Assembly: GCA_001949185.1 (NCBI GenBank)
Contig: BDGG01000003.1
Coordinates: 4,137,158 to 4,201,157 of the forward strand
DNA: 64,000 nucleotides
Source: Ramazzottius varieornatus
Taxonomy: Eukaryota; Animalia; Tardigrada
Reading direction: 5' to 3'
The notes under the pieces are model-generated. The model was given only the letters and a program-made list of their open reading frames with translations, was not told where the DNA came from and ran no database searches. Of this stretch, positions 1 to 63,800 are shown piece after piece. The translations under genes were made by a program, and so were the position numbers. Within the stretch, counting starts at the first letter, position 1. Every line of letters starts with the position of its first letter.

Positions 1-39
1 AGCGTGCGCCACTTGAGACAACGATATGCTGAAGTTTGT
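1..39. repeat. Intronic palindrome family, right arm only (window edge)
   Basis: agcgtgcgccacttgagacaacgat. Confidence 0.8.
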
Positions 40-149
40 ATGTCGAGCTCCTCTACGGCAGAGTAACTCAAGTGGGGGGAGCATAATGGGGCATTTATCG
101 AAGGCAGCGATGACGTTAAGCGCGTCGTCTGTTTAAAATGATGCCAAAA

Positions 150-424
150 TTATAAGACTCTTACTTGGTCACTGGTCACGGGCTTTTCCATGGCTTTCCA
201 GTATTACCCAGTAAGTGTACATGTTGCTCAGAAAATCCAGAGGGTAGATTAGCATCGAAGAACGGAGATGAGCGCGACTGAAATTTGTTTTGAAATATGG
301 AGTAATGGTTTCTCTTCTTGCAGGAAGGATGATTACCGCCAACTATATTCCGCCGATGAACTATCATCAGCTTTTCAAGGAATCGCTGAAGGCTGTCACA
401 CCTTTACCGCCATCGACAGCTTAA
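150..424 (+). CDS. Probable last exons of an unidentified gene entering from the left edge
   Basis: A donor gtaagt at ~211 and an acceptor ttgcag at ~323 join ...SLVTGFSMAFQYYP to RRMITANYIPPMNYHQLF...STA*. The frame and identity are uncertain. Confidence 0.3.
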
Positions 425-812
425 AACTTTTCACTTGTTGCTTTACTATCACATCTTTTCTTGGGTTAGAACAGAACATACCATACCACGATGGCTTCTC
501 AGTCAGCTTTTTATCCCTGCTACCTCCAACTGCGTTGTACATTGTCTATCTTTTGCTTCAGTGAGTTCGTACTGGCAAAAATTTCTTTATTACTACGTTT
601 TTGGTAGCTTTTTCGGATTCACATTCAGGCACATTTGTTTTGAAAGTTGTAAACTAGAAAATACTATTGTCTCAAACGGGCATATCATCTTGACAAGCCC
701 TCGTCATGGAAGATTACCGGAATCTAACACAAAATGTTCTGTATAAAACTAGAAAAACCATGCGAAGTAACGGTAAGACTGTAAAATCGTAGAGCGGCGT
801 TTGAAGTTGAGC

Positions 813-3800
813 TCAGTTGGTCAGTTCTTCCACGTAACTCAAGGGAAAATATCCGATCTGGAAAAGAACCACAAAGATAAGCTTGAGGGTTGCGGGCATG
901 GTGAACTGTGAAGTAGTACCGCTTTCGTGCTCTTGCATACAGTAAACCCACATTCGCAAGGTACACGTGTATGTAGGTGCTGGAAAGACGTACACGTCAA
1001 TCAGCGACATCTATCGTTCACCTGCGTACAGCAATCGGTAACGTATTGCTGCATATGTGTATGCAGGTGCGTGAGCGACTGCGGTCACTCGGCGCTCTTC
1101 AAGCTACGGATAAAGCAGGCTCTAGATTTCTGTAGTTACCTTTCCATTACATCGGCCTTTCCACCAGCCGCGCTGTTCACCAGCTCGTGCCAGAATCTCC
1201 ACCTCATCACCCACACTGATCGTAAGCATATTAGCTGCCGTAGCGGAGAAGTTGTAGCGCACAACTGCGCGAGGATAAACGGGCTCTTCGCCGGGTTCGC
1301 CACTCCCCGAGGTCTGAGGCAACAACGCTTTCTTGTACGGTATCTTCAAATTGCAGTTCATGCCTTGGAAAGACTGGGCTAAACTGTTGTTCTCGTACCA
1401 CTGTACAAGTTCGGGTACGCTGCGGAAGTACTTTGCGGGTGCCAGGAAGAAGTTGTTCTCTGCTTGGAGGACCTTGATATGACGCACTTTGTCCTCGTAC
1501 CTAAAAGAGCAATCTAATTGTTACTCCCTCCATTATTACCAGAGGGAAAGCGCGTAAACTTACTTGATACTTATGGCTTTGTAAGATTCGCCTTTGTTAC
1601 TGATCCTCAAAAGGAATGTTCCGTTAGGAAACTTCTGAAGGATATCTCCAGCTTTGTCTCGGTCCATGCGACCCGCGAACCACGGGAATCCACTGAGCTG
1701 TTGCTCGTCCTCAGACTGGTAACTGAAGCTGCCGTTGGAAGATGGCGAGAAGGGATTGAAAGGCGAGACTGGGTTCGGTGTGGCAGGCGACAGCACGCTG
1801 CTGCGCGAGTTAGCACGAGGTAGTAGTACTCCGTTTTCCCTTTCTTGGTTCGGACTGTCTCTGCTAGTGGAAGAGCTCGGAGAAGCGGACTCCTCCCTCA
1901 GCGAAGCAGTGCTGCCTTGGCTGGAAGGACTTTCACCGAAGGAAGGTGTACCGGTGAATGCACCCATCGACATGGTCCGGGGGTTTCTCATCTTGTTCGT
2001 CGGTGGAAAGCCACCTGAAACAAGAAACGTTAAACCTGAGCCAAGGAATCTGAGAAGCCGGCAAGTAAAGTGGCGCACTCTTTCAGCCACAACGACTACG
2101 GTGCATCACTCGGAGAAGAAAACAACCGAAGTCGATAACCCGCCGTTTCCTCAAGTGGCGCATGCCGCCGGTGTTACTGGCTGAAAGCGTGCGCCACTAG
2201 GTACGACCTCCTCGAGGTTCTTTGCCCATGTTCCGATTAACGAAACAACCACCCGAATTGGTCACGACTCACCTGAAGAATGTCGATGGCTTTTGGTCAA
2301 AGACGATTGCGACCTCGAAGAAATCGTCGGTTTGGTGTTACACTCCGTGAAGGGAATACACTGCTTGTGTACTGCGCCCTTACATACGGAACATTCGTAT
2401 CCCTGGAAGAAGGAACCGAGCAGGAACTTGTCACAAAAGACACATAACGTTGGCTGGCTGAAAGAGGTAAACGACAGGCGATGTGGAACGTGGTTGGGTA
2501 GCGTTGAAGGCTCCAAACTCTCACTACAAACACTTGAAATAAAGCACGCATTTCTCGTGTTACAAACTCAGAATAAGCAACAGAAACAGAAGGACTTTGT
2601 TTACAGAGCCGTTTTGATTGCTGTAATCCACTTCTCGCGCAAGCTCTCGGTCTTTACCGCCATTGTGTAGGCTACGCGGTGGTCCTTTGAATTGAAAATG
2701 TGCCACTGATGACTCCACTGCAAATACAGGCGTGTATCGTCATACTCCGATTATTCAGAATATTTATCGACAGAGACATTCAATGCGAAATATACTGCCT
2801 TATTTCTAACATCCGCACAGAAACTTCCACGCGCATAATTCATCCTATCGAGGACCGGTAACAGCACTCGACAGAATCTCCTTTCCAAGTGGCACGCGCT
2901 CTCAGCCAACAACAATGGCAACATGCGCCATTCGGAAAAAAGATCCTGCCGAGTTCGTTTCCAAGCTCTCGTGCTTCTTATAAGTGCTGAATGTCGTACC
3001 TTATCACGTAATGGTTTGACCGGCAGAGTTTCGTCCACCCGGAAGTCGTTGATAACCAATGCGCTTTTGTACGTATACTGATTTGCCTGTTGAAGAAAAA
3101 AGACTATCCATTGTTTACTGTACTGAAACAGCCAGACAAGACTTGTGTAAACAAAATTCACCTTCAGAGGCTTCGCGATGAGCAGCACGCGGTTAAACAC
3201 GAAGATGTGCCTAACGATCAAAAACTCATAAAAAAACAGTAACTCATAAGAAAACGTATAAAAAACCTCCGAAGAGTTTTGACTCACCGAGTTTTGGGAC
3301 TGGTAGCCTCGTGAGGTCGGAACCGTACGATGCCGTCTATCAGTAGTCGACCATACTCAGTGAGATGTGTGTCTGGATTCGGCATATTCAGGTCCACAAT
3401 GCTAGATTCGACGGTCTTGATGATGTCGATCATCTCGCTGTCTCGCTTGACTTCATTGACGTAGTTTGCCAAGTCTATCATGATATTGAAGGCCGTTTCC
3501 AGTTCTTCCAAGTCTTTTTTAGGCGAAGTACTGGAGAACTTCTTCAAGGTAGACAGCAGCAGATGGTACTTTAGTATTCGCTGCATCGGTAGACTGAGAA
3601 GGTCACGGAGGCGAAACTTCCCATCATTCGTCTCATTTTGACTTCGCTGGAAAAAGCAAACAAAGCATGAACAAACAGCAAAAAATCACAGAAGTAAAAT
3701 AAAAACAAAATGGATGTTCGCCAAACAAACTCGATAGTATCGTTTCCCCAGTGGCGCACGCTTCCGGACGGTGACAGTGACAAAGTGCGCTACTTGGGAA

Positions 3801-5323
3801 AACAATCTTGTTGAGTTTGTGTGGCGAGCTCCACAAAATTTGAAAATTTTGATAATTTACTAAAAAAAATAAAATTAAGATTCAGGAAAAGTATTCATCA
3901 ATAAACATACCCTTTTCAAGTCAAGTCAAATCAAGCTAAAATTCCAACCTTGATGACATCTCCGACGGACGCATCTGCTTTGCACAGTTCATCCAATCGC
4001 TGCTGTGCTCGCGGCAGTTCAGCACAGTACCGGCCATACTTGGTGAAATCTGTTCGCCACTTGAGAAAACATTCCTTTATTTTCGTTTCCATGTTAGCCT
4101 GTGGTGGTTGACAGGCCTTCTTCAGGTCCGCGAAGAAGCCAGCATGACACTGGGCCAACTCCTCAATGTTGATAAAGACGGTCAACACGTCGTCAGCCGT
4201 CATCGCGTTTTTCACCGCCTTCAGGAACTTGTTCACGATCATCTGCAAGGCTTCCAAGTAGTTTCTCTCTGTGTCAAGGAGCTCTTCGATGCAGTATTCA
4301 CGTTTAACTTTCGCCTCTGGTGCTTGGTCAACCTGACACAACAGGCAAGAAAGATAAAGTCGATCCTCAATTTGATTTATGGGCTTTTAGATTCTAGCGC
4401 TTCAGTTGCAAAGATATAATATGAGAGGAAAAACTCTGGAAAAAATATCGAACCTTTCTAGCCGGAAGATTGTTATACACCACTTCTTCATACAGGTGTT
4501 CTTCTTCTTTCGACGTGCGAAGAACGTGTGCGGGCTCCAGCGGACCATCAGGATCGTTTGACGAATCATTTCTACAACGAATACAGAGATTCATATCCAA
4601 GCATAGTCTACAAGACAGATATTGGAGTGCGAATCTTCACTTACTCTGCCCACTCTTCCTCGAGTTTTCTGAAGGGTTCCAAGTTGTAATATTCGACTTG
4701 ATTTGTGGGAGGTCTCGTCGGAAACTGCGGAAACCCTCTTCCTTGTACTGCTTGTGTTTTTGATAGATCCGACAGACACTCGATCACCTAAGCAGTAACA
4801 ACAATGTAAACATGGCCCATATACCAGCCGCGTAAGTTACACGCAACACGAAATTATTGATAGTAGAACAAGTCATAAACTACCTTGACAAAGTCAGGAC
4901 CCAGCTCCAGGAGCATTAAAGGCTCGAACAACTGTCCCGGTTTCATCCCGAAGTGTATCTGGCACGTCTTCAGAAACAAGTTGATATTCTTCATGCAGAG
5001 AAACTGTAATTAACCATAAACGAGTTGATTAAATAGATACATTCGGTTCATGAACCCTTTACCATATCCATAAGCATATTATTGCTGCATGAAAAGACCT
5101 CGTAGAACCTTACCTCGGACATCTGTGGCCGAAGATTGATGGCCGTCAAATCCAGGCATTTCGGTTTGAGAATATGCAGAAGCTGACAAAGTATGGATCC
5201 ATCCTGTAGAGTTCGGGCAAGGTCCAGCACTTGAGCCTGAGGCCACGTAACGCGGTGGTTCCCAGGAAGTGCTTGGCATCGCACCAGCCACGAAACGCAG
5301 TCTTTCCACAGATGCTCAGCCAT
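813..5323 (-). CDS. vav: Vav Rho/Rac guanine-nucleotide exchange factor (CH-acidic-DH-PH-C1-SH2-SH3), multi-exon
   Basis: N-terminus MAEHLWKDCVSWLVRC...LARTLQDGSILCQLL (CH); YEEVVY acidic region; DH (REYCIEELLDTERNY, MQRILKYHLLL); C1 (H..CVFCDKFLLG..CSVC..HKQC); SH2 (WFAGRMDR, GTFLLR); SH3 completed by a last exon at 857-813 (IGYFPLSYVEE). Confidence 0.95.
2060..2226. repeat. Intronic palindrome family, double core (Vav intron 2272-2015)
   Basis: Two AAGTGGCGCA...TGCGCCACT units. Confidence 0.85.
2857..2962. repeat. Intronic palindrome family (Vav intron)
   Basis: 35-bp stem and 25-nt spacer. Confidence 0.9.
3719..3826. repeat. Intronic palindrome family (Vav intron)
   Basis: Full-length arms. 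Confidence 0.92.
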
Positions 5324-9239: not shown

Positions 9240-10916
9240 ATGATGTGTCATCCGCGGAGCCGGAAGTTCCATACAGCATGCGTCAATATACTGACCAAAC
9301 TTCTCTATTACACCGGACTACTTCCCCATACCGATTCAAAGCGGACTTTGTTGTACTCTTTCAGAACTGGCGTGGTGATAGGTGCTGCTTTCATTGCTCT
9401 AACGTTCGAAGTAATCTCAAACGTTCAGAATCTGATCAACTTCTCCCGTCAGAAGAACGGCGCGAAGGTGGTCCAAGTTGTCTACGCTGCAAAATACGTC
9501 ATTCGGGTAACTGTGACTTTTATTGTCATTGTTGTGTTCTCGAGAAGCTCTCGCGGACTGCAAAGAGTCAGCGACGAACTTGGAGGAGTTCCCAAAGACC
9601 AGCATGCTTTCGCCTTCTCGGAACAATCCTCTAAATCTATCTGGCTTCCATTCATCACGCTGTTGACGTTTGTCGTGTATTACCTGTCCCATTGCGTGAC
9701 TCGCGTCTACACAATGCTGATCAACGAGACGACGTACGCCGAGTTCCCGGGTGGGATATTGACTGCAGCTCAAGAGGATGTGGTAGTTCTGGTCACCAGA
9801 AACTCCACAGAAGCCGTCAGAGTTTTGTGCGCCGGATACCTCGGCCACCTGTTGATTACGTTTGCAAATAAACAAGTAAGAGAGGCCGAAACTATTCTGA
9901 GAACAGAGATGGGTGATTCGGAGAACCCGGAAGTGCTCGAGACTGTTTTACGCTCGGCATGGGTAACCAGAGAACGGACTCTTGGAATAAGCAGGATTAT
10001 TGAGAGAGAACTGCAGCTGCTGCTGACGGTAGTTTTGGTAGCTGACATTCTCAGTATCGCCAGCTGCGTGGGGGAAGTTTTGGCTCCTGAGAACGTCTTC
10101 AAAAGCGTCCGGCTCTTGACGTACATGTTGTTGTATGTTGTCAGCAGTGTCAATATATTCACTGGACTGATAAAAATAACGGACAAGGTACGACCGTCGA
10201 CAGTCATTTTTCGAACGATGTCCCAATCGTGGATACTATGATTTGTATGGAAGCTCGGCAAACCAGCTCAACCAGATCCTTTTCCCAAGTGGCGCACGTT
10301 GCCAGCCAATGCACTGGAAACGTACGCAGCTTGGAAATATGGTCGATATTGTTTGCCGAGCTCAGATATTGTGTACCGTCTCTTATTTCAGGACCAAAGC
10401 ACTTATGTGGCTCTTCAGGAGGTCCAGTCCAGAATAGCACTGATCAGCGATTCACAACCTCCAACCAAGAAGCCTGGTGGGCTCGTCGGCGTCAGCATTA
10501 TTTCGGCTCAACAACTGCTCAAAGACTGCACTTTCGGTCAGTTTCACTCGAATTCGAGACCATCAACATCTTCAAAAACCGATATACGTAGTCTTCTCGA
10601 GGACCTCCAGATATTTTCCTTCAGTTGTTTCGGACCACGAAAAATTTCCCCAGAACTGCGTGCTTTTGGGCATGTCAACGAAACAACTATCATCAAGGTA
10701 GACTTATCACACTGCAGATACGACGCAAACTGTGGCATTGTTTGTGTCATAAAAAATGGCCTTTATGGTTTGCAGATTATAGGTGTGTTCATCGCACTGT
10801 TTGCCTTCCTGTTCGAACAGAACGACCAACCGGTGTTATCTCATGTCAGTCCGAATGGGTTCTTCTCTTCCGCCGTATCGCTCAACTCATTTACAAACAC
10901 CACAATGCGTGACTGA
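9240..10916 (+). CDS. Gustatory-receptor-like 7TM chemoreceptor
   Basis: A long first exon has multiple hydrophobic helices, followed by short 3' exons and a TM7-like end (TTIIK/IIGVFIALFAFLFEQ). This exon layout is typical of the GR superfamily. Confidence 0.55.
10252..10362. repeat. Intronic palindrome family (GR-like intron)
   Basis: agctcggcaaac...gtttgccgagct clamp plus core. Confidence 0.9.
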
Positions 10917-11103: not shown

Positions 11104-13104
11104 TTATACGAGAAGACTGGTCGTTGTCTCTTTGGGTTCTTCAACAGCCGATCCTGGTCCAGCTTCCTTCTTTTCCTCTTCCTTCCCAACTCCGTTACTC
11201 AGTCCAGCTTCTGAGCTCATGGAGATCCCTGAAGGCTCCCGGTGGTCCACCGGCCATATTTGGTACTTGGCCGGCATCCAGGCCTGCACAATACAGTCTT
11301 CGGCAACAGACGCTATCATCAGCTTCCTCCCCTGCGCAGGATTCCACGTCACATCTGTCACCCTTCCACTATGTCCTCCATGGACAAACTGCAGTTCAGC
11401 TGGTGTGGTCAAATCCACCCTCTCCTGCTTCTCCCCAATCTTCCTCACGTCCCACAGACATATCCGCCTATCCGCCCCACCCGACGCCAACAACGACGCT
11501 CTCTCCACGTCCTGACACCAGTCTATCGTAAAGACTTCATTCGTATGATACTTCAAACTGTGTAGCCGCCTCGACAGGTTCCTCATATCCCACAACGCCA
11601 CTGTACCATCGTCCGAACCCGTAGCTAAGATTGATTCACTTAACGCGAAGGAAATGGCGTTGACACTGGCTTCGTGGGCTTCTACACGATGACTAGGCTT
11701 AGCTAGGTTTCTACTGCGTATATCAAACAGACAAAAACACTTGTCGATACCCGCTGAACCTATGATGGTTGAATGAAGAGGATGCCATGCTATGTCTTGT
11801 ATCTCTGTATCGTGGCCTGTGACGGTCAAGTGCGGCTTAACATCTTGGCGGCGTTTCGCCCCACAAATGTCCCATACAAGTATTCTGCCGTCTTTTCCAC
11901 AACTGGCAACGTTACCTGCTTTGTGTTCGGAGGGGTTCCATGCGAGACCATGGGCGGAAGGAAATCTGAGATCGTGGCCTTGGAGTTCTAACATGGGTGG
12001 TTTCTCAACGATTGGGTCTTCGAAGGACCAGCCGTGTTTGAGTTCGCTCTTCCAGTCGTATATGACTACGCTACTGTCTGCGAGCTTCGCACAAACGAAC
12101 TCGTTCTTTTGTGGCATTACCCGAGCGTGCGTGATGGGAATGCTTTGGCAGATGATGCCATGGATGGAGATTATGTTCTGACTTCCGGTGAAGAGACCAA
12201 TGCTAGGACGAAATTCGGGAGTCTTTTCGTCTAACTTGCCGAAACCTTCGGGACCATCTTTCGGTGTGCGAACATTCAACAGGATGATACCGTTGAAGTG
12301 AGCTTCGGCGTCACCGCGGGCCGTTGTTCCTGTAGAACGGAGTTCCATCAAAATAAAGTAACTCACTTCAAGCGACTTCGATAAAGCGGCCGGCAAAAGC
12401 AGCGTACACGGTCGTTAAATAAAGTGGCGCACCTCTCCACTATTATTGGCCGGCAGCGTGCGCCACTTCCAACAGCGAGCCCTGTACATTCCCTTTGCCG
12501 GCCTCCCAGTTATTACAGGGATATATATCACCTTCATACCTATCACTACTTTCTGTTGTCGATATTCACAGCCACTTTCCGTATAGACCACCTGAAAGAA
12601 ATACAGCGGTCAGAAAGGGTATCGAAATGCGGGTTCGTCCACTGTAACGGAATTCGCCTGATGATAATTATAGGGACTACGCAGTCATTGCTTACTTCTT
12701 CAACGTCTTCGATCCAGTCGATGGTATAAGTAGGAAACTGGGTAGCCGTCATCATGAACATATCGTACAGAAACGGAATGTTCTTCTTCCATATCTTGTA
12801 TTCCTCATTGATTCGCTTGTCGTTTGTGTGACGAGGTGGTGGAGGTGCGCCATTTTCTGTTAACCCTCTTTCGGCCGATGGTGCTCTGGAGTTGTCTGCT
12901 GGCGTTGCGAGGCTAGCCACCGATGACGGAAACTCTGGAGCGGATAGACGAGACTCCTCGGCATCCATGTCGTACCCATGGTTAGACTCCTCCACACCAT
13001 TCTGTAACGAAACTATAAAGGAACACGTTAAACAGACTCTGCAACTGGAGTTAAGGTACCTCGAGGCCCGAATTCGAGTATTCTTCTGCTGTCATAATTT
13101 TCAT
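11104..13104 (-). CDS. Divergent RBBP4/RBBP7 (RbAp48/MSI1)-like WD40 histone-binding protein
   Basis: INEEYKIWKKNIPFLYD, ILATGSDDGTVALWDMRNL, LLASGGADRRICLWD and PAELQFVHGGHSGRVTDVTWNP..IASVAED are RBBP4 hallmarks. It has long N- and C-terminal extensions. Confidence 0.88.
12388..12503. repeat. Intronic palindrome family (RBBP4-like intron)
   Basis: Perfect core; outer arms diverged but still paired. Confidence 0.9.
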
Positions 13105-16888: not shown

Positions 16889-17762
16889 TTAGAAATTCCA
16901 GTCTTTTGATTCAGTGATTTGCTCAAACATTCCTTTCACTTTTCCCAGCATCATTTTACTTTGGCTCACCATTAAAAATTTTATTATGTTGATTTGTTGG
17001 TTTGTTCTAACGGTACGAACTCCCGTTCGCGTCTTAAAGTTCAACCGCCTACGGTGATGAGTTTCTTTGTGTTTTATGGTATTGTCAAACGGGAGCTGGG
17101 CAGACAAAGCATACCAAATGGTTATTTCAAGTGGGGCGTGCTCTTATTTCCACTGGCTGTCACGGTATGCCACTCAAGACGACTATGTTGTAGGTTTTGT
17201 TTGCTCACCTTCCAAATGCTTTATATTATTTTTTTCTCAGAACCTGACAGTTTTATCTGCAGAGTGGATAACTTGTGCCTTGAAGTCCGGACTTGAACCT
17301 TGAACTGCTTACAACCAGTATACGCTGATCACAGTCTGGCGGGTGTGGCCCTGATGGCAGATCCGTGTTCCGTATTGTTTCCGGTACGCACTTTAAACAC
17401 TCTGCCGTAATAGCAAGGTATACAGTTTACACCATGTGCCAGATAGCTGGTAGATAAACAACTGTGAGGGTTGTTTGTTTGGAAAACTCATTCACCTGAT
17501 AAAAAGGCAAGTTTGATGAGCCAGACGAAAATCGAGGGTTTATTGCTTCACGCAGTGCCAGTGGGCGACTTTCTTGTAAACAGTGTCGTGTAAACCACCG
17601 CACAGGTTATGCTCTGTACTTTGCTGTTCATCCGCCATTTTGTAATCCAACGTGTGCAAATACATATCGAAGATTACACCACCATCTGGGCGATAAGACC
17701 CTCTAGCGTCGTCGGAGGTTTCTATTACATAGTATTATAGCCAAGTTTGATCGGAACTAAAA

Positions 17763-44074: not shown

Positions 44075-44168
44075 GCATACAATCTCCTTGTTTTGAGTGA
44101 CACCCTTCCAACACTAACACTGAGAATGTGCGCCACCTGAGCTAATTTTCTCGTACGTTCTGTTTGCG
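44075..44168. repeat. Degenerate palindrome-family copy outside any CDS intron
   Basis: Right arm gtgcgccacctgag...tgtttgc; left arm decayed. Confidence 0.55.
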
Positions 44169-44434
44169 CAGGCTGCCCAGCTCCCGCATTTTCAAAACAG
44201 TAATTGGCCATCAGATCGCCCATCAGACCAGCACTCGAAAGGGCTGGCTGGCGTTGATTGTATGATTGAGTGCATTTCAGTCTAGTCTTTTTACTCGGTA
44301 GTTAGAACAAGGGCACTGCTCAAATTTTATTTTCTTTCCGGGTTGGGTTCTGAGGTGTCACTTTTCCTATCCTCAAAATTTCTTTCCCCTTGCGCTTTTG
44401 AAGCTGTGGAGTCATTCTGAACGCTGTGCAGAGT

Positions 44435-45562: not shown

Positions 45563-45978
45563 GTCGGTAGGAGCATTAAATTTCAAAGTATCAATATATT
45601 CATAGTAGAGAATGTGCAGCGAGTATTTGACGATACTTAGAGACGCTTCACGATCGCTTTAGTTTCACCAGTTTAGTTTTCACTATCTGTAGATTTCGAC
45701 TCACGAGCTTTCAACTGAAACCTGATAAAAAGCTGTTAGTACACTTCACTTTTTAATCCCTTTTTCCAACCAGAATTTTCAGTTAAACATTTTGATTTGC
45801 TCATTCAATACCATTTTGCTTCTCTGCTGGTACAGTTACCCATACGTTTCTCCGTATGTTCCGTTTTTCCATAGGCTATATAGCCATTCGACTTGCAGAG
45901 AAATACCCAAAAACTAATCATCCGTCTTAAAATGCCATTGGTCAAGTAAAACCCAAAAAACAGCAATGACGTTGCTTT

Positions 45979-50425: not shown

Positions 50426-53154
50426 ATGTCTCTGCAAAGGAAAATACGGGATAAGAACTTGATTAACGTGCGTATCGTATCGATGGATGCGGAGCTTCAG
50501 TTCACTGTACCGGTAAGCCTGCTGTGGCTATCATGATTACACTGTCTACATAGCGTATAAGCCTCATAACAGATTAGAAGGTGTATATTGTTATATTATA
50601 TGTCCATGTTCCAGAGGACCTCATATGGCAGAGACTTGCTGGACGTAGTGTATCGTGCTCTTGGGCTTCGAGAAACCTGGTATTTCGGATTACAGTACCA
50701 GGACGACAAGGCGCTGTTCAACTGGCTGAAAGAAAACAAACCTGTGAGCATTTCCGTTTCACCAGACAGTCTTCCGCTATGCCAGTTGTCCCACATAATT
50801 GCATTCCTGTTATCCGTAGCTATTGAAGCATAGTGGACTCTCGCTGGATGGCTGTCTTACCTTTTCCTTACTTGTCCGCTTCTACCCCGAAGATGTCTCC
50901 GAAGAACTCGTCCAGGACATCACTCAGCACCTCGTCTTCCTCCAAGTGCGCCAGTCCATCTTAGATAGCCACATATCCTGTCCTCCAGATGAAGCTATCT
51001 TGCTTGCCTCGTACGACCTACAGATCAAAGTATACATCAAACATACCTCCCTCTCGTGCCTGTTTTCAAGGTTAAATCATGGTGACGTTTTCGCAGTACG
51101 GTGATTACGATGACACGAACTTCGAGCCAGGCGCACTGCCAATCGAAGAGTTACTTCCCCTCAATATCCTCCAGCAATATGCCAACACGTCCCGCGAAGC
51201 ATGGGAAAACCGTGTCCGCCAGCTGCATGTTGACAACTATGGCTTCTCGAGAGCAGAAGGTGCGTAATGCGGGCTCTCACTTAATTAGCTTGTGCTTTGA
51301 AAAACTACACTGTGTTATACATTCCGCTCGATGTTCCAGCTGAGCTGGAGTACTTGAAAGTTGCTCAGAACCTGTCGATGTTCGGAGTAGGATACTTTCA
51401 GATCTCGGTACGTGGGTCCTCAACACATTATGTTGGTGTTTTGAGTTGCACATTCGTCTTTACTTGCAGAATAAGAAGGATTCTGTGGTGTACTTGGGCG
51501 TGACCGCCTTCGGTTTGAATATTTACGATAAGAACGACCGCCAGACACCCAAAATTAACTTCCCGTGGAGCGAAATTAAGAATGTATCCTACGAAGACAC
51601 AAAGGTTAGTACTAATGAGTGTCTAAACAGTATGTACGGTGTAGACAACACATCCTTTTCCAGTTCATCATACGGCCTGTCGACAAGAAGGTCCCCACGT
51701 TCTCCTTCTACTCCTCCAACCTTCGGCTCAACAAAATCGTACTGGATCTGTGCATGGGTAACCATGACCTGTTTCTGCGACGCAGAAAGCCGGTAAGACT
51801 TCTTTCATAACACATAGTTTTTCAGCACCATCATAAAACGGCTGTCTGTTCGTGTAAGGATTCTATCGAAGTGCAACAGATGAAGCTGCATGCTAAGGAA
51901 GAACGTGCTCGTCGTCAGCTGGAACGGCAGAAACTGCTGAAAGAAAAGCGCCTACGCGAAGAACTTCAACGTGAGAAGCTGGAGCTTCAGAGGCAGCTCT
52001 TGGATATGCAGGAAGAAGTGCGCCAAGCCAATGAAGAGATGGTAAGCACAGATGGAAGCTGGCCGAACTTTGCGGCGGGCAAGCAAAAGGCACAAGCTTG
52101 TTGTTTCAAATGGCATACGTTAGCAAACAATGACAATAAGAACGTGCGCTACTTGATGTAACAACTTTGTTTGCCGGCATCTCAGATTAATCTTCTTGGA
52201 CAGAATACTTATTCTTTGGCTTTCGAACCGATCGTCTTTAGAACCGATGTCATGAGACAGCATCAGTGTTGTCAGAAAAAGCAAAGTACTCGGAAGAGGA
52301 AGCGACACTTCTCAACCAAAAAGCTCTCCAAGCGGAAGCGGAAGTCCAGAAACTGAAGTTGACGGTGCTGCGTTCTGAAGAGGAGAGGATACTAATGGAA
52401 AAAAAGGTGCAGGAAGCTGAAAACATTGCCTCTCAGATGGCTGACGAGGCTGAGCGGTGCGCTGCGGAAGTGGAGGATTTCAGACGTGAGATGCTGAAAG
52501 CCAAAATGTACGAAAAGATGGCCAGAGACCGGCTGATGGAAATTTCTTCCACTTCGCCAAGCCCACGGTTTGCCGTCTACGAAAAGGTAGACAGCATCGG
52601 CAGCACACATTCCATCGCGAATGGCATGATGATGGACACTGAGAAACTCTCTGCCGAGATCGAGCGAGAACGGTAGGTGAATTTTCAAACCTGATACACG
52701 TCGAACTTTCATGTATGGGAAGTCATTCGAGTGACGCACGTTCTTAGTGTAGTGGACGGGAAACGTGCGTAACTTGAATGAGGACTTGCACGTTTCTTTT
52801 GCCGGCCTCCAATAACACTCAAATGATTGAGGTATAGCTAACTTGGCCTTTCTCTCTTCGTTGCAGACTAGAATACGTCCAAAAGAGCAGGAATTTCCAA
52901 ACACAGCTGAACGAACTGAAGACCGAAATCGAAATTATCAAGTCCGAGGACGCACTAAGCCCGTTCTACGCATTGGATGTCGCTGGAATGCGGAAGGAGA
53001 AGTTCGCCACATTACAAAAGGTCCGTCCTGCCTTCGCGGTTTCAAATCATGAAATATTCACAAGTGAATGTATCGCTCATCTGCAGATCTTTCTTCTTTG
53101 CAGGCAAGTGCCGGCTCCACGAAAATGCGCATTTCGCATTTCGAGAACCTATGA
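50426..53154 (+). CDS. NF2: Merlin/NF2-like FERM protein
   Basis: VSMDAELQF; [13 protein letters not shown]; [18 protein letters not shown]; [23 protein letters not shown]; Merlin-type C-terminus [12 protein letters not shown]. Confidence 0.88.
52078..52175. repeat. Intronic palindrome family (Merlin intron)
   Basis: Diverged core with 25-nt spacer. Confidence 0.8.
52700..52803. repeat. Intronic palindrome family (Merlin intron)
   Basis: gagtgacgcacgtt / aacgtgcgtaactt, a compensatory A-T pair in the core. Confidence 0.82.
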
Positions 53155-56009: not shown

Positions 56010-56306
56010 CACTGTGGTGCTGCTGAACCGCGCGTCCATCTGAGACCAGCTTACCATAAAATTCGCTTTGTCATGATACAGGCTGTCCCACACTACAAGG
56101 CTCTGACACTGGATACAGGAGTATTTAGAATCGAGTCTTGCAGTGTTTGCCTTTTTGTTTCGCACGTCTTTGAATGACGGCATGGATTCCCTGGTGCAAC
56201 TGGCTGAGCACTGGTCCCAGCCTACTATCGTCTTTGACGTACACAATCAAGAGCTTGATTATGCGTTTCTGGTCCCGGCAACGCGCGGTTCAGCAGCACT
56301 ACAGTG
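56010..56306. mobile_element. 297-bp MITE with 26-bp TIRs (CACTG termini), copy 1
   Basis: cactgtggtgctgctgaaccgcgcgt ... acgcgcggttcagcagcactacagtg. Confidence 0.75.
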
Positions 56307-56307
56307 G

Positions 56308-56353
56308 NNNNNNNNNNNNNNNNNNNNNNNNNNNNNNNNNNNNNNNNNNNNNN
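56308..56353. other. Assembly gap
   Basis: 46 Ns. Confidence 1.
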
Positions 56354-56354
56354 G

Positions 56355-56651
56355 CACTGTAGTGCTGCTGAACCGCGCGTTGCCGGGACCAGAAACGCAT
56401 AATCAAGCTCTTGATTGTGTACGTCAAAGACGATAGTAGGCTGGGACCAGTGCTTAGCCAGTTGCACCAGGGAATCCATGCCGTCATTCAAAGACGTGCG
56501 AAACAAAAAGGCAAACACTGCAAGACTCGATTCTAAATACTCCTGTATCCAGTGTCAGCGCCTTGTAGTGTGGGACAGCCTGTATCATGACAAAGCGAAT
56601 TTTATGGTAAGCTGGTCTCAGATGGACGCGCGGTTCAGCAGCACTACAGTG
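56355..56651. mobile_element. Same MITE, inverted copy 2 across the N gap
   Basis: Reverse complement of 56010-56306 with about 3 differences. Confidence 0.6.
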
Positions 56652-56854
56652 CCGATCAGGCTGATCAGACAATTTTTGTTTTCTTTTTGTCCAGCTCCAG
56701 CTTTCTCTTTTTCCGATTTGGGAAGGTTCTCCGTTTTCTGTTCGCCCGATTCGTCTGCGTCCTCGCGTCGTCAGCGTCAGCAGTAAAACGGCAGCCGATG
56801 GATTACGCGTAGCTTGTCGGGAATAACTCTTGCCATTTCTCCTTGCATTGCAGG

Positions 56855-59800
56855 ATGGACCACAGGTAAGAATTATCGAATCGTTTCCGCCCCTGCATTG
56901 ATTGAAAATAATTGCTGTTTGCTCACAACACTGTAGTATCCGCGACGGCCCACGTGTATCTCCCCGCAAGACGGGATTTCTGTACGACGCCTTTATGGAG
57001 AAGCATGAATGTCCCTGGGATCCCATGTGAGTCTGGATTTTATTGTTGACCATTTGTCCTCAATGGCTTGCCATAAGGGTTGACTAACTCAGTCTATGTA
57101 GGCATATCGAGAACCCAGCACGGATGAAAACCATTCTGAAGCGCTTACAAGAAGTTCATGGTATGAAATCCACACTCCAGATATTTTGATTTTCTATGAG
57201 CCTACCATATTCACCATCTTCCAGGCTCACCATTAAGCGAATGCGTCCCTCTGAAGGTAAACCTAGTCGAAGACCCGAAGTAGTTCCTCACTGAACAGCT
57301 GTGGAACTCAGATGGGATAGCATTGATTTCCCTAATTGTAGGCTAGATTCGCAACCGAGAATGAGATTCGGCTCGTTCACGAGCAGCCACTCATCAACAC
57401 AGTCAAGCGAATTTCGGCGAGCGAGCCCGAACCAGACTATCTGTCCTATAAGGACTTTTCGGCGCTGTACAACGCAGTGTACATGAACGAAGTAAAATTC
57501 TGTCTCCTGGTCTTCCGTTGAAAATTGATATTTCATCTGAATACATACGGTACACTTATCAGAAGTCGGAAAAGTGCGCGCTTATGGCTGCTGGGAGTAC
57601 CATTGACCTTGTGGAAGAAATTCACAATGGACAGATTAGCAATGGGATGGCTATCGTTCGGTGAGTCCTCTGCTCATCTTTCCCTGTTAGACCCTTGATA
57701 ATGATTGTACTGTAGTGGCTTATTGAAATGAGCTTGCAGTCCTCCTGGCCATCACGCATTCCCTTCTGAAAGCAACGGGTATGCAACGGGTATTCGGCAC
57801 GTGTGTAAATACTGATGCTGCGTCACAAATATGGTGAATACTTAGTTTTGCCTTACAGGTTTTGTATTTTCAACAATGTGGCCATTGCGGCTCAGCATCT
57901 GCTCACCGAATGTTTGCTCCAGAGGTAAGATGTGAAATTCGCTGTTTGTATCCTTTACCGGTTTACTAGCTTGATCGCGTGATTTAGAATTCTCATCGTG
58001 GACTTTGACGTTCACCATGGACAAGGCACGCAGAGAACCTTCTACGAAGACGATCGGTAAGTACTGTTTCATCGCCTCACAAACTGGGTGGTCGGCAAAC
58101 AAACCCAGCAAGATTGTTTCTTCGAGTGGCGCACTTTACGGTGCTATTAGCTAAACAATTGCACCACTTTGAGAAGCGTAGCAAATTCACCAAGAGTGTC
58201 TTTTCCACGTAGCGCACAGTTTCAGTGTTATCAGCGGGAACATGCGCTACTTGATCAAGTTTACTTGTCCAGTTTGTTTGCCTCGGCCCTAGTTATCGTT
58301 CTTTTCGGCTTCTTGCTTTCAGTGCTAATGTGGCCGTGGTGGTTTAGGGTGCTTTACTTTTCAATACACGTCTATGAAGATGGAGGAGCTTGGCCGTATC
58401 TTCGGGAGAGCGACTTCGATCACATCGGCGAAGGAAAGGGCCGAGGATTCAACGTGAATGTTCCTCTCAACAAGGGCGGTCTGGGGGACGCGGACTACAT
58501 GGCGATATTCCATCGGCTCCTGATGCCTATTGCGTTCGAGGTATTGTCCACCTGTAGTCACACTTTGCACGGCGCAGTATCACTGTTTTACTTTTATTCT
58601 GTTGGGTGTGGACCTTAGTACAACCCCGAATTTGTGATCATATCTGCAGGATATGATGCTGCCATCGGTTGTCCAGAAGTAAGTGCATGTTTGAAGTCCC
58701 CAATGTGTAATAAGAATGTACACGCAGGACGAGAAATTATGGTACAGTAAAAAGTATGGTACGAGGAGGAAAGACCAACTTTTCTAACGGGAATAGTGCC
58801 TAATTTCAGACTCCATTTTCAAATGGCTTCTCTTCTGGAATTTCTCCCATCAAGATCTCCCGCAGATTTTCGGTTCCGTCTGGCTAAGAACGGAGCAAGG
58901 TGTCGGGGGATGCTCGTGAATTAGCTTCATATTCGAAAACCTGGTGGCAGCTAAAAAAATTAACAGTTAGAAAAGTATTCGCAAGCTTGGCGAGTTAGAA
59001 AAGTTGGGTCTCGCTCCTCGTACAGGCCTTCTCGCTGCGGCTACGGCGGTACGGGAGCCCGTACGTAGCCGGTCCACAGTCATACTTTTTCTGACACTTT
59101 TCTACGGTCGAATTTCCATTTCGCCTTCCTTTCCGCCTGTCCTTAATTTTTACTGTACCATAATTTCTCGTCTTGCGTGTACAAGGTTCTGCGTTGTAGG
59201 GACACATGAGGGTCTCACCGGCAATGTACGGGCACATAACGCACATGCTGATGAGCCTGGCTGGTGGTAAGGTCGCCGCAGTTCTCGAAGTAAGTCTCGC
59301 GTAATTTGCTCTTCACCAGAGAATGAGCCCTTCTACCTTGAAAGAAATAACACTAGATTATTCTAGGGGGGATACTGCCTGGACTCACTGGCCGAAGTAA
59401 GGCTGCTTTCCATACAATATCGAATCATAATACGGGACGTCGGGAAATGAACTCACTCAAATGTCGTCCTAAATGGCGCATGCTCTCGACCAGTTACAGT
59501 GTAAAGATGCGCCACTTGAACTAACGATCTGGGTGGAATCATTTGCCGGCGTCCTAATTACACCGTGCTGAATAATAAAAGTTCATGGTGCAATACTGTA
59601 GCAGAGCTTCGCATCCTGACGCTTGTTTGTGTGTAATAGGGGGTCGTCTGTACGTTGGAAGCGCTCCTTGGCAGGCACGTTCAACCACTTCCAAGTCTTT
59701 CCGCGGCGGACGAAACGTATGTTTTCTGGCATTCAAATCCTTACTGTTTGGTAGACAATTTCACGGCTCCTTGCAGGGTTGTTTCTTCCATTTTGAATGC

Positions 59801-62232
59801 TACTTCGTGCCTCAGGAAGTACTGGAACTGTTTGAAGTTCCAAGACCAACCACACAAGGACGAAAAGTATCTACTGTTATCACTGTACTTGCAAAAGAAT
59901 TACCTCATGGTTACTGTACTGTTTTGAGGTTGCCCTTCTATCAGCCGGAAGTGAAGTACTCGCCACCAGATTGGCTGCCTCATCCAAACGAGGCCTACGT
60001 AGACCTGAATCCGTATCCAGCAGCTGAGAGAGTAGCTCTTCGGGACGAAATCAGTGCCTTGAAGCTACGCTACGATAAGTTTCGCAGATTTATGCCGACT
60101 CAACACAGGTAGTACCAACCGCACGGTACGGCGTTTGAAAAGTAACATTACTCTGACAGGTGAAAGTGCTTTTAGGACCTGCTTTGCCTACGACGAGCTG
60201 ATGCTCGAACATGCGGAAAATGGTCCGGAGGTCTCCCAGCGAATATCGGTCATCTACAATCACCTACAGAAAGCCGGTCTGCTGGAACGATGCCTGCGCG
60301 TACCTGTACGTATGTCGTGTCGTGTCAGCGTTTCTTTCTGCAACAATTTTGAACCGGCAGAATTTTTGACAAGTTTGTTGTTCCTTACCGCAGTCGAGGG
60401 ATGCTACGCCAGAAGAGCTTCTGCTGGTTCACGACTCGGACTATGTTGAACTTCTTCAGAAAGAACCCACCGAGTTCGCAGCCGAGGCGAGTCAGCGGAA
60501 ACAGAAACGGACACCAGGCCGCAGCCGGTGGCCAAATGACATTTGGGCCTCCGAGGTACGTTCCGCTTGTTACGGGAAACCTGCAAAAGCACGGGTAACT
60601 AGTACAAGCCCCATGCATTTGCAGGGAACAGTGCCAGCAGTTTTTCGTGCGGCTGGGTCTTTGTTGAATGTGGTGGACTGTGTCATGTCTGGAAAAGCCT
60701 TGAACGGCTTCGCGATTATACGGTACGTTGTCATTAGATCAGCTTCAGTAATGTGGAAATACTGAACTCTTGAATTTGGTGGTCTCAGTTGCCTCTGTTT
60801 TAGTCCTCCGGGTCACCATGCTCACCCCGATCATCCGGCTGGTTTCTGTTTTGGTAACTGCTCGTTAAATTGTGAGCCAACAGTAAATCACAGTACGAGT
60901 AGTTCACATGGACATTTTTGCAGGCAACAACGTCGCTATTGCAGCAGCGCATCTCCTGAAAAATCGGGGACTGCAACGGTATGTCATTTTGTCAAGAAAC
61001 AGATCTGTCCGGAAAATCTGCGTCTATTCAAACGGGCCTCCGCTAATGCAGGATTTCTAATTTATAGTATTTTGATTGTTGACTGGGATATACATCACGG
61101 TGATGGTATACAAGAGATTTTCTACGACGAGCCCAGGTAGCGTCACCCTCCTTTTTCCACTACGACGAGGGGAAATATTCAAGGCAGAAACTGTTTTCCG
61201 TAGAGTTTTGTACATCTCACTTCATCGGGGTGGGGATTTCTATCCGGGCGGAGAAGGAACCGGTGTAAAGTTTACTGGACGCGGAGAAGGCCAAGGATAC
61301 AACATGAACATTCCGTGGAAGCAGAAGGTAAGAAACGGTAAAACTTCGCTCTTGTTTCTTGAACACTTTCGTAAATTATTATCGATCATGGCTGCGCGAT
61401 TCTTCAGTCTGGGCGTGGTTGCAGGGCAAAGGTGATGGTGATTATTTGGCCGCTTTTTTACAGCTGGTCATGCCGGTTGCATATGAGGTGAGTCTTTCTT
61501 GTTCATAGACATCTCACTAATTTCAGTGCTTTACGCGAAACAGCTCGGCGAAAGATCGATTTCTTCAGTTCGCGCCAGAGATTGTCCTGGTGTCCTGCGG
61601 GTTCGACGCGGCGTTGGGCGACCCGTTAGGAGAATGTGCGGTCACGCCTTTCGGCTATTCTCTTATGACCAGAATGCTCATGAGCCTGGCAGGCGGGAGA
61701 CTGGTTCTGGCTCAGGAAGGAGGCTATAACCTTACGGTAGGTTTCCCCTGAAAAATTAAATAGTGTCATCTGATCGCGGAACAGACTGGATAAGTGTTGT
61801 AGGCTTTAGCCAAATCCGCCGAAAGTATTTTCCGCGCGTTGATGGGATACGACGTCGAGAAACTCCCGAGAGCTTTGACGCCGAGCTCTAGGTGAGTTGC
61901 TATAGTACAGTGGAATGTTATATGTGGTACGCGGAATGCAGAAATTGAAGCTCTGTTTTGGGTAGTGCTGTGGACGATATCAACCATGCCATTGACGCCC
62001 ATGTTGGTCCCCGTCGAATATGGAATACGTTGCAGTACCGTTGTAAGTTCGCCGTTAGCATACTCCGGCTTCATGTGGTTTCTGCGGACAGCTCGGACGT
62101 TTTGGAGTGGTTAACCCGTCGACTATTTTTTCAGTACATGTTGGTAACTTGAAAGCTGAAGGTGCGTCTGAGGACTGGGAAGACGAACTGTCTAAACTGG
62201 CGGAAACGGTCCAGAAGGTTCGTCTCGATTAG
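56855..62232 (+). CDS. HDAC6: Class IIb histone deacetylase with two catalytic domains (HDAC6-like, no ZnF-UBP)
   Basis: CD1: [34 protein letters not shown]2: [31 protein letters not shown]. About 25 tiny exons. Confidence 0.88.
58094..58282. repeat. Intronic palindrome family, double core (HDAC intron)
   Basis: ggcaaacaaac...gtttgtttgcc clamp around two cores. Confidence 0.88.
58721..59179. mobile_element. TA-flanked MITE (33-bp TIR) in an HDAC intron
   Basis: TA|cacgcaggacgagaaattatggtacagtaaaaa ... tttttactgtaccataatttctcgtcttgcgtg|TA, with one mismatch. Confidence 0.85.
58762..59020. mobile_element. Nested mariner-like MITE (TA-flanked, ~27-bp imperfect TIR)
   Basis: TA|cgaggaggaaagaccaacttttctaac ... 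gttagaaaagttgggtctcgctcctcg|TA. Confidence 0.75.
59441..59548. repeat. Intronic palindrome family (HDAC intron)
   Basis: Variant arm aaatga/tcattt, 25-nt spacer. Confidence 0.87.
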
Positions 62233-62916
62233 AGACGTCACCGCGGATTCCACATACACTTTATTGTATTGCCTGAAGTTTTTTCGCGTTTTACTTTGGT
62301 TTCCAAACTATTGTTTACAATTCTCGTGGACTATTCTCGTTTCATCGATAAATTTGCGGTGGTATCTTGAGGTTTCAAAACTTTGTTGTATATTTTTACG
62401 GGTTTAGAGTTTTTGTTTCAGCGTTTCGGGCAGTATTGTTATTTTATTTTTCTTGTGCTCATTCATCCATGCGATCAAATCAGCTTAATATCTTGATCTT
62501 ACTTTTGCTATTATAGTTTGGTCGCCATCCCGTTCGGTCAGTTGTGTGAGCCTGAGTTCCCTCGAGTGGCCGGGTTATTGCTGTCAGAAGTGTGATCAAG
62601 CACTCAGGACAAGCCTCGAATATAGTATGACATGACATAACATAACATAACATGCCATGATCGATCGAACGAAAACAAGGTTGTAAAATTAAGGCCTAGG
62701 TCGTCGTGGAGTTCTTGCATTCCTCGCGAAATTCGGTGCCAGAAATCTGTCTCAGACTGTTCGCTTCGTACCATCAAGTTGTAGGTACCAATGTTGTACC
62801 CTGGAGGGCTCGGTATTCGATACTTCTCCGTTGAAGCTTACTTTTCCAGATTGACTGATGACCATCTCGCTGATGCTGCATATGATTCAAGTGACGCAGC
62901 AGAACTGCGGATATCG

Positions 62917-63800
62917 ATGTTCCTCAAGCTGAGCTTCTGCATTGTGGCGCTGCTCACCCTCATCTTTCTCTTTCTGGACCGTATTGAGACAACAGGTAGG
63001 TCTGTTTGCACGCGTATAAGATGAAAGATAAGTCATCCACACGGATGAATGTTCTGTTTTAAAGCCATTGAAGAGAATTCCAACGAACAATATTACCGTG
63101 GGCCACCTGCTGAATTGGACTACTTCGATTTCGTCGCCAGAGCCATAGGAGCTGACATTCTCGAAGACGCTCCTCCTTCAAAGGCTAAACCAACAGAATC
63201 AGATCAGCACCGCGAAGTGGTCGAGACCGTCAAGGAAGAATCAGTGTCCGTTGCAGCTGCTAGAGACAAACTTACTACTGTAGCTGACGAGAAAGAGGTT
63301 GTACTTGAGCAGAAGAGTGTGGTTTCTACGCTAGAACACCACTGGGATACCGTAGAGGCTCAGGATTTGTGGGACTTGTTCGACGTTGGTGCATACATAA
63401 CGATTCTCTTCCCTGATCCGTTCCAAGCCTACGTCTTCTCTGGGCTGTTGGTCTGGTTACTTTCCGCGCTGGTTCTACTCCGTCGTGAGTGGAAAAAGTC
63501 CAGCAGGATTGTGCTTGAAGTGTACCTACAACAAGGAGCAGGTTTGTCCTGTTCTGTGAATGTGGTCATGTGAGACACAAGCTCGACAAAGTTGTTTTTC
63601 CAAGTGGCGCACCTTCTCAGTGAATAACACTGTTAATTGTGCACTACTTGACGAATCAATATTGTCGACGTTGTTTGATGAGCTCTTATCCTATCAGAGC
63701 TATCACCGATTTTTTATGTCTTACAGAAGCGACTCAGCTTGTGGAGGACAGATACAAAGACCAGCTGAACCTTCCCGGGGAATATTCTCTGTTAGCTTGA
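62917..63800 (+). CDS. Uncharacterised protein with signal/TM N-terminus, acidic middle and C-terminal TM
   Basis: Three exons join in frame (62917-62995, 63065-63541, 63727-63800). An alternative ATG lies at 62791. Confidence 0.6.
63573..63677. repeat. Intronic palindrome family (orphan-gene intron)
   Basis: Full arms, 26-nt spacer. Confidence 0.9.

Follow-up and report, generated by a model that had tools for sequence, protein, structure and literature searches.

Distribution and Structure of the Palindrome Family

The 64-kb window, that is, the whole stretch of Ramazzottius varieornatus DNA analyzed here, contains a Vps16 gene, an RBBP4/7-like WD40 gene and an LCAT-like gene, and a palindromic element recurs in it (Table 1). 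The core AAGTGGCGCAC was found 33 times at no more than one mismatch, compared with an expectation of 0.99, and not one shuffle out of 100 gave so high a count. An nhmmer profile resolved 29 units at 26 sites. The recurrence reported in an earlier note, of a ~105-bp palindrome with 24 sites and 28 cores, was therefore confirmed, while its tally and length were revised; the units at 2850-2971, 14622-14742, and 17086-17219 were additional to those listed there. In well-kept copies, the element is 123 nt long and runs from GGGAG to CTCCC, with two inverted arms of 49 nt, forming terminal inverted repeats, around a loop of 25 nt, and leaves no possibility for an ORF. The inner motif AAGTGGCGCA occurs once per arm and is sharply bounded. 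Of 104 sampled copies, 83 had a core-to-core spacing of 25 nt and 18 one of 24 nt.

The count of strict core pairs in the whole genome was at least 7,666, compared with none in the reversed control. In 264 kb of unselected DNA, 70 nhmmer units were found, corresponding to ~13,800-14,800 copies genome-wide, and at ~14,000 copies the family accounts for ~3% of the 55.8-Mb assembly of R. varieornatus, which ranks among the most compact genomes of animals. Such a high copy number and homogeneous size are characteristic of a MITE. Perfect 41-nt arms were absent from the genome and arms with three or fewer mismatches numbered only 69, and the family has no young copies remaining. A literature search, with Repbase and Dfam outside its scope, found no paper describing this palindrome family.

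Table 1. Copies of the palindromic element in the 64-kb window and their host context.
Positions	Copy	Host strand	Context	Remarks
1-55	Right half-copy, severed by window edge		Unclassifiable	nhmmer match to model positions 82-135; core 4-14
2115-2240	Copy plus extra solo core 2068-2078	+	Predicted intron between ORFs 1723-2112 and 2242-2667	Strand call weak
2850-2971	Decayed copy	+	Predicted intron between ORFs 2242-2667 and 3012-3239	
3706-3838	Full copy	-	Predicted intron, ~392-nt gap between ORFs 3287-3685 and 4078-4386	
4022-4075	Half copy (right core and inner arm)		Gap shared with copy 3706-3838	
10244-10370	Copy	+	Predicted intron 10188-10391	
12388-12513	Copy in RBBP4/7-like WD40 gene	-	Predicted intron 12376-12695	
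14622-14822	Two abutting units in Vps16 intron	+	Predicted intron 14602-14886	
15562-15695	Well-kept copy, second Vps16 intron		Predicted intron 15489-15738	Flanks AAAT/AAAT; hairpin z -9.0
17086-17219	Copy, probably non-intronic		~200 nt 3' of Vps16 stop codon; 3' UTR or intergenic	
24375-24510	Copy	-	Predicted intron 24342-24563	
30171-30266	Partial copy	+	Predicted intron 30160-30334	
32276-32426	Copy	-	Predicted intron 32252-32435	Flanks AGAT/AGAT
35635-35767	Copy	+	Predicted intron from 35614	Predicted acceptor coincides with element end
37143-37347	Two core-loop-core modules, shortened inner arms between	+	Predicted intron 37123-37391	
38698-38819	Copy in LCAT-like gene	-	Predicted intron 38656-38836	
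42766-42898	Copy	-	RNA-verified intron 42692-42934, 243 nt	Joint in 3 runs
44062-44188	Most decayed full-length copy, non-intronic	+	Transcribed first-exon/5' region of gene	nhmmer score 24
45198-45331	Copy, small subfamily with compensated arm variants	+	RNA-verified intron 45179-45377, 199 nt	
46825-46958	Copy	-	RNA-verified intron 46803-47010, 208 nt	
48107-48230	Copy	-	RNA-verified intron 48066-48297, 232 nt	
52074-52190	Decayed copy	+	Predicted intron 52042-52241	
52728-52816	Partial copy	+	Predicted intron 52673-52866	
58081-58295	Two modules, one site	Ambiguous	Coding ORFs on both sides	
59427-59560	Copy		Unclassifiable; just 5' of + ORF 59579-60109	Intron or 5' region
63573-63691	Copy		Unclassifiable; just 3' of + ORF 63049-63570	Intron or 3' UTR

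An assembly gap at 56308-56353 is unrelated to the palindrome family, the nearest copies of which are more than 1.7 kb away. It has on each side a copy of another, unrelated TIR element of ~297 bp, the two copies being inverted, and thus its two sides are reverse complements, neither collinear nor in frame.

Location of the Copies in Introns

Spliced RNA contigs verified the intron location of 4 copies, and same-strand coding ORFs on both sides support that of ~16-17 further copies. The proteins of flanking exons were compared exon by exon with Hypsibius exemplaris: the protein alignment to the H. exemplaris orthologue was contiguous across one ORF-supported intron, the host of the copy at 12388-12513, with its two flanking exons matching residues 27-99 and 113-508. 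The revised intron finder reproduced three of the four RNA-verified introns exactly, so the predicted intron boundaries elsewhere are approximate. In all four RNA-verified introns, the GT/AG splice sites lay beyond the element by 19-74 nt, where the copies have no sequence in common, and unspliced depth was ~2-4% of exon depth.

The verified host introns measured 199-243 nt, and most element-free introns of the same stretch 61-91 nt, with two others of 159 and 185 nt. The greater length of host introns described previously was thus supported, with these values replacing ~175-420 nt against ~50-70 nt. Host intron minus element left 65-110 nt, similar to the element-free introns, indicating that the copies entered pre-existing introns and created none.

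About 21 of the 23 classifiable sites in the window were intronic, compared with an expected 34%, the share of introns in non-exon DNA according to the published annotation (which assigns 22% of the genome to introns and 43% to intergenic DNA; PMC5531438); this share of non-coding DNA was based on that annotation and one 5.9-kb RNA-supported stretch. The intron bias that had been described from 22 intronic sites is therefore real, with three sites unclassifiable. At least two copies were non-intronic: besides the copy at 44075, which lies in a 5' exon region and had been taken for the only one outside CDS introns, there is another 3' of the Vps16 stop codon. The copy at 44075 is the most decayed full-length copy, as the same description held: RNA contigs 43991-44659 and 44103-44659 run without a joint over its region, and it forms no significant hairpin (z = -1.5). 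Two gene-dense stretches had 0.9 units per kb of non-ORF DNA, and three gene-poor stretches had 0.03-0.25 (chi2 = 58.8, p = 5e-12). Element density thus tracks gene density and not non-coding space; intron enrichment was seen, and a distribution in proportion to non-coding DNA, which the earlier note had set against its own reading, was not. The intron bias may be due to insertion preference, selective survival, or both. Both spacer orientations occurred relative to the host gene, as noted before, at equal frequency (28 and 31).

Terminal Sequences and Transposon Class

The flanks of the 19 strict-end copies had A at -4 and +1 in 12 copies each, T at -1 in 11 and at +4 in 12, and W between, so the 4-bp A-W-W-T motif was found on both flanks. 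The AWWT/AWDT target is a hallmark of Sola1 (PMC3845634). The motif could belong to the terminal repeat, because it is its own reverse complement. The central dinucleotide was equal on both sides in 17 of 47 copies, compared with a null maximum of 13. Among the strict-end copies, an exact 4-bp duplication was found in 2 of 19 (p = 0.17) and a match at three or more of the four positions in 6 of 19 (p = 0.11), and chance matches are common because the flanks are AWWT-biased. The rarity of exact duplications counts against the MITE account; any target-site duplications would be mostly decayed, and the post-insertion decay calculated on this basis was between ~0.1 and ~0.3, with only 19 copies having trustworthy ends. 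Together with the short non-coding palindrome and ~14,000 copies, none of them young, the A-W-W-T at both ends agrees with the previous proposal of an old MITE-like family.

The printed terminal repeat of a Sola1 MITE contains AAGTGG (PMC3845634), and so does the inner motif AAGTGGCGCA; this match is only 6 nt long and is located 38 nt from the end of the tardigrade element compared with ~17 nt in the Sola1 MITE. Similar to Sola1 MITEs, the element is short and non-coding, with long terminal inverted repeats starting with GG and A-W-W-T or A-W-D-T insertion tetranucleotides. However, the Sola1_NA MITEs of Bombyx mori and Rhodnius prolixus are 194-709 bp long (PMC3845634, citing Bao et al., 2009), whereas the tardigrade element is 123 bp, almost wholly palindromic, ~100 times more abundant, far older, and without a linked autonomous partner. 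The palindrome family is most likely of Sola1 type, known here from non-autonomous copies alone. Bacterial REP/BIME sequences are also dispersed imperfect palindromes that at times form clustered modules, but the present family belongs to a eukaryote, lies in spliced introns, has a transposon-like target motif, and is 123 bp long. Taken together, these copies are probably relics of a non-autonomous cut-and-paste DNA transposon (MITE) of Sola1 type that settled in existing introns and whose hairpin is decaying.

Conservation of the Core

Under core-blind sampling, the 11-nt cores were 88-92% conserved and the arms and loop ~70%, so preservation is roughly threefold better in the cores than elsewhere in the element. 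Only these 10-11 nt show excess conservation, which may reflect either a transposition requirement or host-level selection. In the simplest reading, AAGTGGCGCA would be a sub-terminal transposase-binding site, better preserved because every lineage needed it to keep transposing over a long period of activity. The outermost 9 element columns, which are presumably also required by the transposase, were the least conserved (65% identity), which speaks against the MITE account.

Two window copies had nearest relatives that scored 102-103 bits, whereas simulating a star phylogeny with 15,000 copies gave 60-71 bits. A single-burst star phylogeny was acceptable in a 44-copy sample and was rejected by this simulation against genome-wide nearest relatives; activity was prolonged, not one burst. 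The nearest relatives are ~80% identical, and thus each copy has decayed by roughly 10%, equal to the core divergence. With this non-star genealogy, the arms and loop may have acquired much of their divergence before each copy was last inserted.

Both observations weigh against host-level selection, a tentative alternative that we consider unlikely. In this view, a host protein or domesticated transposase would bind the dsDNA at AAGTGGCGCA and its inverted partner, so that the pair would persist at a fixed 25-nt spacing in thousands of copies, most of them intronic, while the rest decays. That the pairs in ~14,000 relics are under host-level purifying selection as dsDNA binding sites appears rather doubtful; their putative binder would perhaps be a domesticated Sola1 transposase or a zinc-finger chromatin protein. 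Several results are in favor of it. In 30 copies picked by their left half, the right core was 91.5% identical to the consensus and the right arm 70.7%, and in 28 copies picked by the inner arms alone, 76 of 616 core positions differed (12.3%, hand count). The edges of the conserved block are sharp, with the adjoining arm columns and the last core base at 40-60%. The GC-rich core decays least, although decay in the arms is faster at G/C than at A/T columns. The copies show the symmetry of DNA, with no orientation or G·U strand bias, and the loops and AWWT flanks look as decayed as the arms (flanks ~60-79% retained, vs. 88-92% identity of the cores). In three members of one small subfamily, about half of the loop positions differed and only 18-32% of the core positions. 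If the decay of the A-W-W-T flanks times the last insertion, the cores decayed more slowly afterwards, which a pure transposition filter would not predict. Against this, there is no known binding factor, and selection would have to act on ~28,000 sites without a stated benefit.

Mobile elements are known to carry transcription-factor sites, such as E2F via Brassica MITEs and CTCF via rodent B2 SINEs. The tardigrade motif is similar in being short, GC-rich (…GTGGCGC…), spread genome-wide, and better preserved than its carrier. Unlike those sites, it is paired and inverted at a fixed spacing, with no known binding protein.

Decay of the Hairpin

A structured intronic RNA, in which the long hairpin gives rise to small RNAs or compacts the lengthened intron for splicing, is very improbable. 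Several copies folded far better than shuffles (z from -4.4 to -14.9), and copies are transcribed in pre-mRNA, as indicated by low-depth unspliced contigs. However, arm-to-arm identity, that is, pairing, was 0.57-0.58, below the arm-to-consensus identity of 0.68-0.70 (loop identity to consensus, 0.69), and the compensated double changes in the arms were recurrent variants shared within subfamilies. G·U pairs were not more frequent on the sense strand than on the antisense strand (34 vs. 27, p = 0.44), half of the copies show the opposite strand to the transcript, and an Rfam 15 search of the 64-kb window gave no match at the gathering score. The low arm pairing, random orientation, and lack of G·U bias indicate that the hairpin is not maintained. 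An ungapped comparison of the arms was set aside, since it is confounded by indels. RNA-level selection on the cores was also rejected, as they showed neither a sense-strand G·U excess nor an orientation bias. The idea that the whole element is a domesticated intronic cis-element was therefore not supported: the hairpin decays, orientation is random, the cores have no RNA-strand asymmetry, and the splice sites are outside.

Introners of Micromonas, Aureococcus, and dinoflagellates supply or create splice sites, so that the intron is the element itself. The tardigrade copies resemble them as a transposon family at intron positions in thousands of genes with a distinct intron length class (host introns about three times the usual length), and an acceptor or donor was predicted at the element end in a few cases (35635, 58081, and 63573; predictions only), but an origin of new introns in this way is largely refuted and hardly credible, since both splice sites lay outside the element in 4 of 4 verified cases, flanks are unrelated between copies, residual introns have normal short length, both orientations are equally frequent, and copies also occur outside introns.

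Proposed History and Significance

Under the preferred reading, of a Sola1-type MITE, a 123-bp element, nearly all of it a long terminal inverted repeat with a 25-nt loop inside, would have multiplied to ~14,000 copies by insertion at A-W-W-T sites. The surviving copies lie mainly in short introns of expressed genes, where the insert is spliced out together with the intron and only lengthens it, from ~60-110 to ~200-250 nt. Copies that landed in exons, UTRs, or compact promoters were presumably eliminated; alternatively, the element may have inserted preferentially into transcribed DNA. Once a copy is in place, its arms, loop, and flanks decay, with no maintenance of the hairpin.

The reported mean intron length of the genome is 158 nt, compared with 61-91 nt for the majority of element-free introns here, and these elements probably explain much of this gap. 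The family should be masked or modeled in gene prediction, small-RNA, and splicing analyses of tardigrades. It is also a clear example of a DNA transposon that survives almost exclusively within introns in gene-dense regions. Either the core would be the first cis-requirement to be defined for a Sola1 transposase in a tardigrade, or it would be a host binding site that a transposon has spread; in the second case, a tardigrade would owe a genome-wide genic cis-element to a dead MITE.

Structure and abundance of the family

The core motif AAGTGGCGCAC was matched 33 times in the window at no more than one mismatch, against 0.99 matches expected, a count that was reached by none of 100 shuffles of the window. 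Forward and reverse cores were paired at a nearly constant spacing, and the aligned copies formed a long palindrome (…GGGAGCTCGGCAAAC…inner arm…core–loop–core…GTTTGCCGAGCTCCC), which in well-kept copies measures 123 nt from GGGAG to CTCCC. An nhmmer profile trained on 21 copies recovered 29 units, or profile matches, at 26 sites in the window; the palindrome family described in the earlier note is real, and the tally of 24 sites and 28 cores given there was slightly low. An Rfam search of the window gave no match.

The family was also abundant in the whole genome (55,842,812 bases in 200 contigs), where 7,666 core pairs were found at up to 3 mismatches and exactly 25-nt spacing, while the reversed control of this search returned 0 pairs genome-wide. 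A 264-kb sample of unselected DNA contained 70 units, 39 of which were strict pairs, and extrapolation from this sample gives ~13,800-14,800 units, or ~3% of the genome. The family is old; a perfect 41-nt arm occurs nowhere in the genome, and arms of this length with at most 3 mismatches number only 69 genome-wide.

Some sites (37143-37347, 58081-58295, and 14622-14822 in the window, and loci L013, L019, L027, L028, and L030) consist of two core-loop-core modules linked by shortened inner-arm pieces of 18-37 nt, with the outer arms absent between the modules. These sites look like dimers that arose through inter-copy recombination or slippage, and not like a single fixed composite subfamily.

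Transposon class and target site

The sequence A-W-W-T was observed beside both ends of the element. Of 19 copies, 12 had A at -4 and 12 had A at +1; T was present at -1 in 11 and at +4 in 12, with W at both inner flank positions between them. The central dinucleotide was equal on the two sides in 17 of 47 copies (shuffled maximum, 13). Exact 4-mer duplications are rare (2 of 19 copies), so the earlier remark that no consistent target-site duplication is visible was fair. AWWT/AWDT insertion is the hallmark of Sola1 transposons, and the terminal repeat of a Sola1 MITE, as printed, includes AAGTGG (PMC3845634). This family likewise contains AAGTGG, and its A-W-W-T flanks match the Sola1 target. 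The family is a real, old, and very abundant MITE, as had been proposed, and it is probably of the Sola1 type.

Host introns and splicing

RNA-like contigs from four runs of four studies, aligned to 42500-48400, showed 13 splice joints and verified four introns with one element each (see the table below). The element-free introns of this stretch measured 61-91 nt, apart from two longer ones (159 and 185 nt); the verified host introns, after subtraction of the element, were 65-110 nt long, which is the normal short-intron length. Their donors lie 19-67 nt and their acceptors 22-74 nt from the element, both outside it, and the flanking intron sequence is unrelated from copy to copy. These introns are efficiently spliced, because their internal depth was only a few percent of exon depth. 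The family inserted into short introns that already existed, and a reading of the copies as introners is rejected. The fifth copy of the stretch lies in a transcribed 5' exon region, since the enclosing contig (43991-44659) continues unbroken across it.

The other introns of the window were predicted from coding ORFs flanking on the same strand together with a splice-aware scoring scheme, which exactly recovered three of the four RNA-verified introns. One predicted intron, around the copy at 12388-12513, is also supported by homology: its flanking exons, searched singly and not joined, matched the H. exemplaris orthologue over residues 27-99 and 113-508. The best named protein match in the window was Hypsibius exemplaris RBBP7 (68% identity), and the animal genes present include a serpin, Vps16, LCAT, and a WD40 protein. 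Altogether, ~21 of the 26 sites were intronic (mostly by prediction), 2 were non-intronic, and 3 were unclassifiable; the claimed restriction to introns therefore applies to most sites, and the two non-intronic copies depart from it. Three predicted introns have an acceptor or a donor at the extreme element end (35764, 58292, and 63570; …CCAG / …CCTAG / GTGAGA…), so a few copies may have given a splice site or polypyrimidine tract.

RNA-verified host introns and non-intronic copies of the family in the window
Feature	Position	Strand	Length (nt)
RNA-verified intron with one element	42692-42934	-	243
RNA-verified intron with one element	45179-45377	+	199
RNA-verified intron with one element	46803-47010	-	208
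RNA-verified intron with one element	48066-48297	-	232
Non-intronic copy, 5' exon region	44062-44188		
Non-intronic copy, beyond the Vps16 stop codon	17086-17219		

Genic bias

The published annotation assigns 22.2% of the genome to introns and 42.8% to intergenic DNA (PMC5531438). The probability of at least 23 of 25 copies being intronic was ~2e-9 at an intron share of 34%, and 3e-5 at a share of 53% estimated from the RNA-supported stretch, both to be read with a final tally of ~21 of 23 classifiable sites. Of five unselected stretches, the two that are gene-dense carried 0.9 units per kb of non-ORF DNA, whereas the three that are gene-poor carried 0.03-0.25 (chi2 58.8, p 5e-12). By both measures, copies are not distributed in proportion to non-coding space, in agreement with the intron enrichment suggested earlier. 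Insertion may prefer transcribed DNA, or insertions elsewhere may have been lost.

At 46117-46242, single RNA contigs span the 3' ends of a plus-strand and a minus-strand gene, so the two transcripts abut or overlap there. A gap of only ~170-240 nt separates the end of a minus-strand gene (near 43751-43821) from the start of a plus-strand gene (near 43991), showing that intergenic DNA is scarce in this region.

Other repeats and an assembly gap

A run of 46 N (56308-56353) lies exactly between inverted copies of another element (56010-56307 and 56354-56651), which is ~297 bp long, has perfect 25-nt terminal repeats (CACTGTAGTGCTGCTGAACCGCGCG), and is young. The two copies stand head to head and are 99% reverse-complementary, and they are either a real inverted pair or an assembly foldback. 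Because of these inverted copies, the sides of the gap are mutual reverse complements, neither collinear nor in frame. Genome-wide, the ~297-bp element has 48 termini (≤2 mismatches), mostly paired ~270-297 bp apart; one pair 2.9 kb apart (contig C4, 4573832-4576714) may mark a copy that is longer and possibly autonomous. All copies of the MITE family are more than 1.7 kb away from the gap, which therefore has no bearing on the finding.

Another palindromic element, located at 31077-31238, is ~162 nt long, and its 54-nt arms show 81% complementarity. Its inner arm ends (…ATGGCGCCACCTAC / GTAGGTGGCGCCAC…) resemble the main-family core (A-G-GTGGCGC). It has only ~5 genome loci at ≤3 mismatches, and its interior is well conserved.

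Conservation of the core

Core conservation was measured in copies whose selection ignored the region under measurement. Among 30 copies selected on the left half, identity was 91.5% in the right core and 70.7% in the right arm, and in 28 copies chosen by the inner arms only, 76 of 616 core positions differed (hand count). The core block has sharp edges and is GC-rich, even though G/C columns decay fastest in the arms.

The AAGTGGCGCA core is a candidate sub-terminal transposase site, which all lineages would have retained for as long as the family was active, with neutral decay following the last insertion. The nearest relatives of two window copies scored 102-103 bits, whereas simulation of a star phylogeny gave 60-71 bits; a large part of the arm divergence is therefore common to relatives and older than the last insertion. 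Nearest-relative identity was ~80% and private decay is therefore ~10% per copy, which equals the core divergence. Alternatively, the core may be under host-level constraint, as decay of the flanking AWWT and of the loops appears to equal that of the arms, conservation is lowest in the outermost columns of the element, and in three members of one subfamily about half of the loop positions differ, against only 18-32% of the core. We weighted the transposase-site reading over this constraint.

A maintained RNA hairpin is ruled out by an arm-to-arm identity below that of arms to the consensus, by random orientation, and by the lack of a G·U bias. Arms were 0.68-0.70 identical to the consensus and only 0.57-0.58 to each other, and in just two of 104 copies with both arms recognisable (window 45240 and L027) were they clearly closer to each other than either was to the consensus. 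Compensated double changes were recurrent subfamily variants; one example, a change from T to C at arm column 30, was shared by 12 copies. Loop identity was 0.69, and loops lay in either orientation relative to the host gene (28 vs 31), as noted earlier. Among broken core pairs, G·U numbered 34 sense and 27 antisense (p 0.44), with no tie to the RNA strand. Several copies retain good folding, which is residual. The hairpin is not selected, and no feature is linked to the RNA strand. Thus, the domesticated cis-element of the earlier note does not hold for the whole element and is a possibility for the 10-11-nt cores only.

In 42500-48400, RNA run X9, which carries the same organism label, differed from the assembly by ~2%, including small exonic indels, and it therefore represents a diverged strain or sibling lineage. 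This run is a ready resource for comparing orthologous copies of the family.
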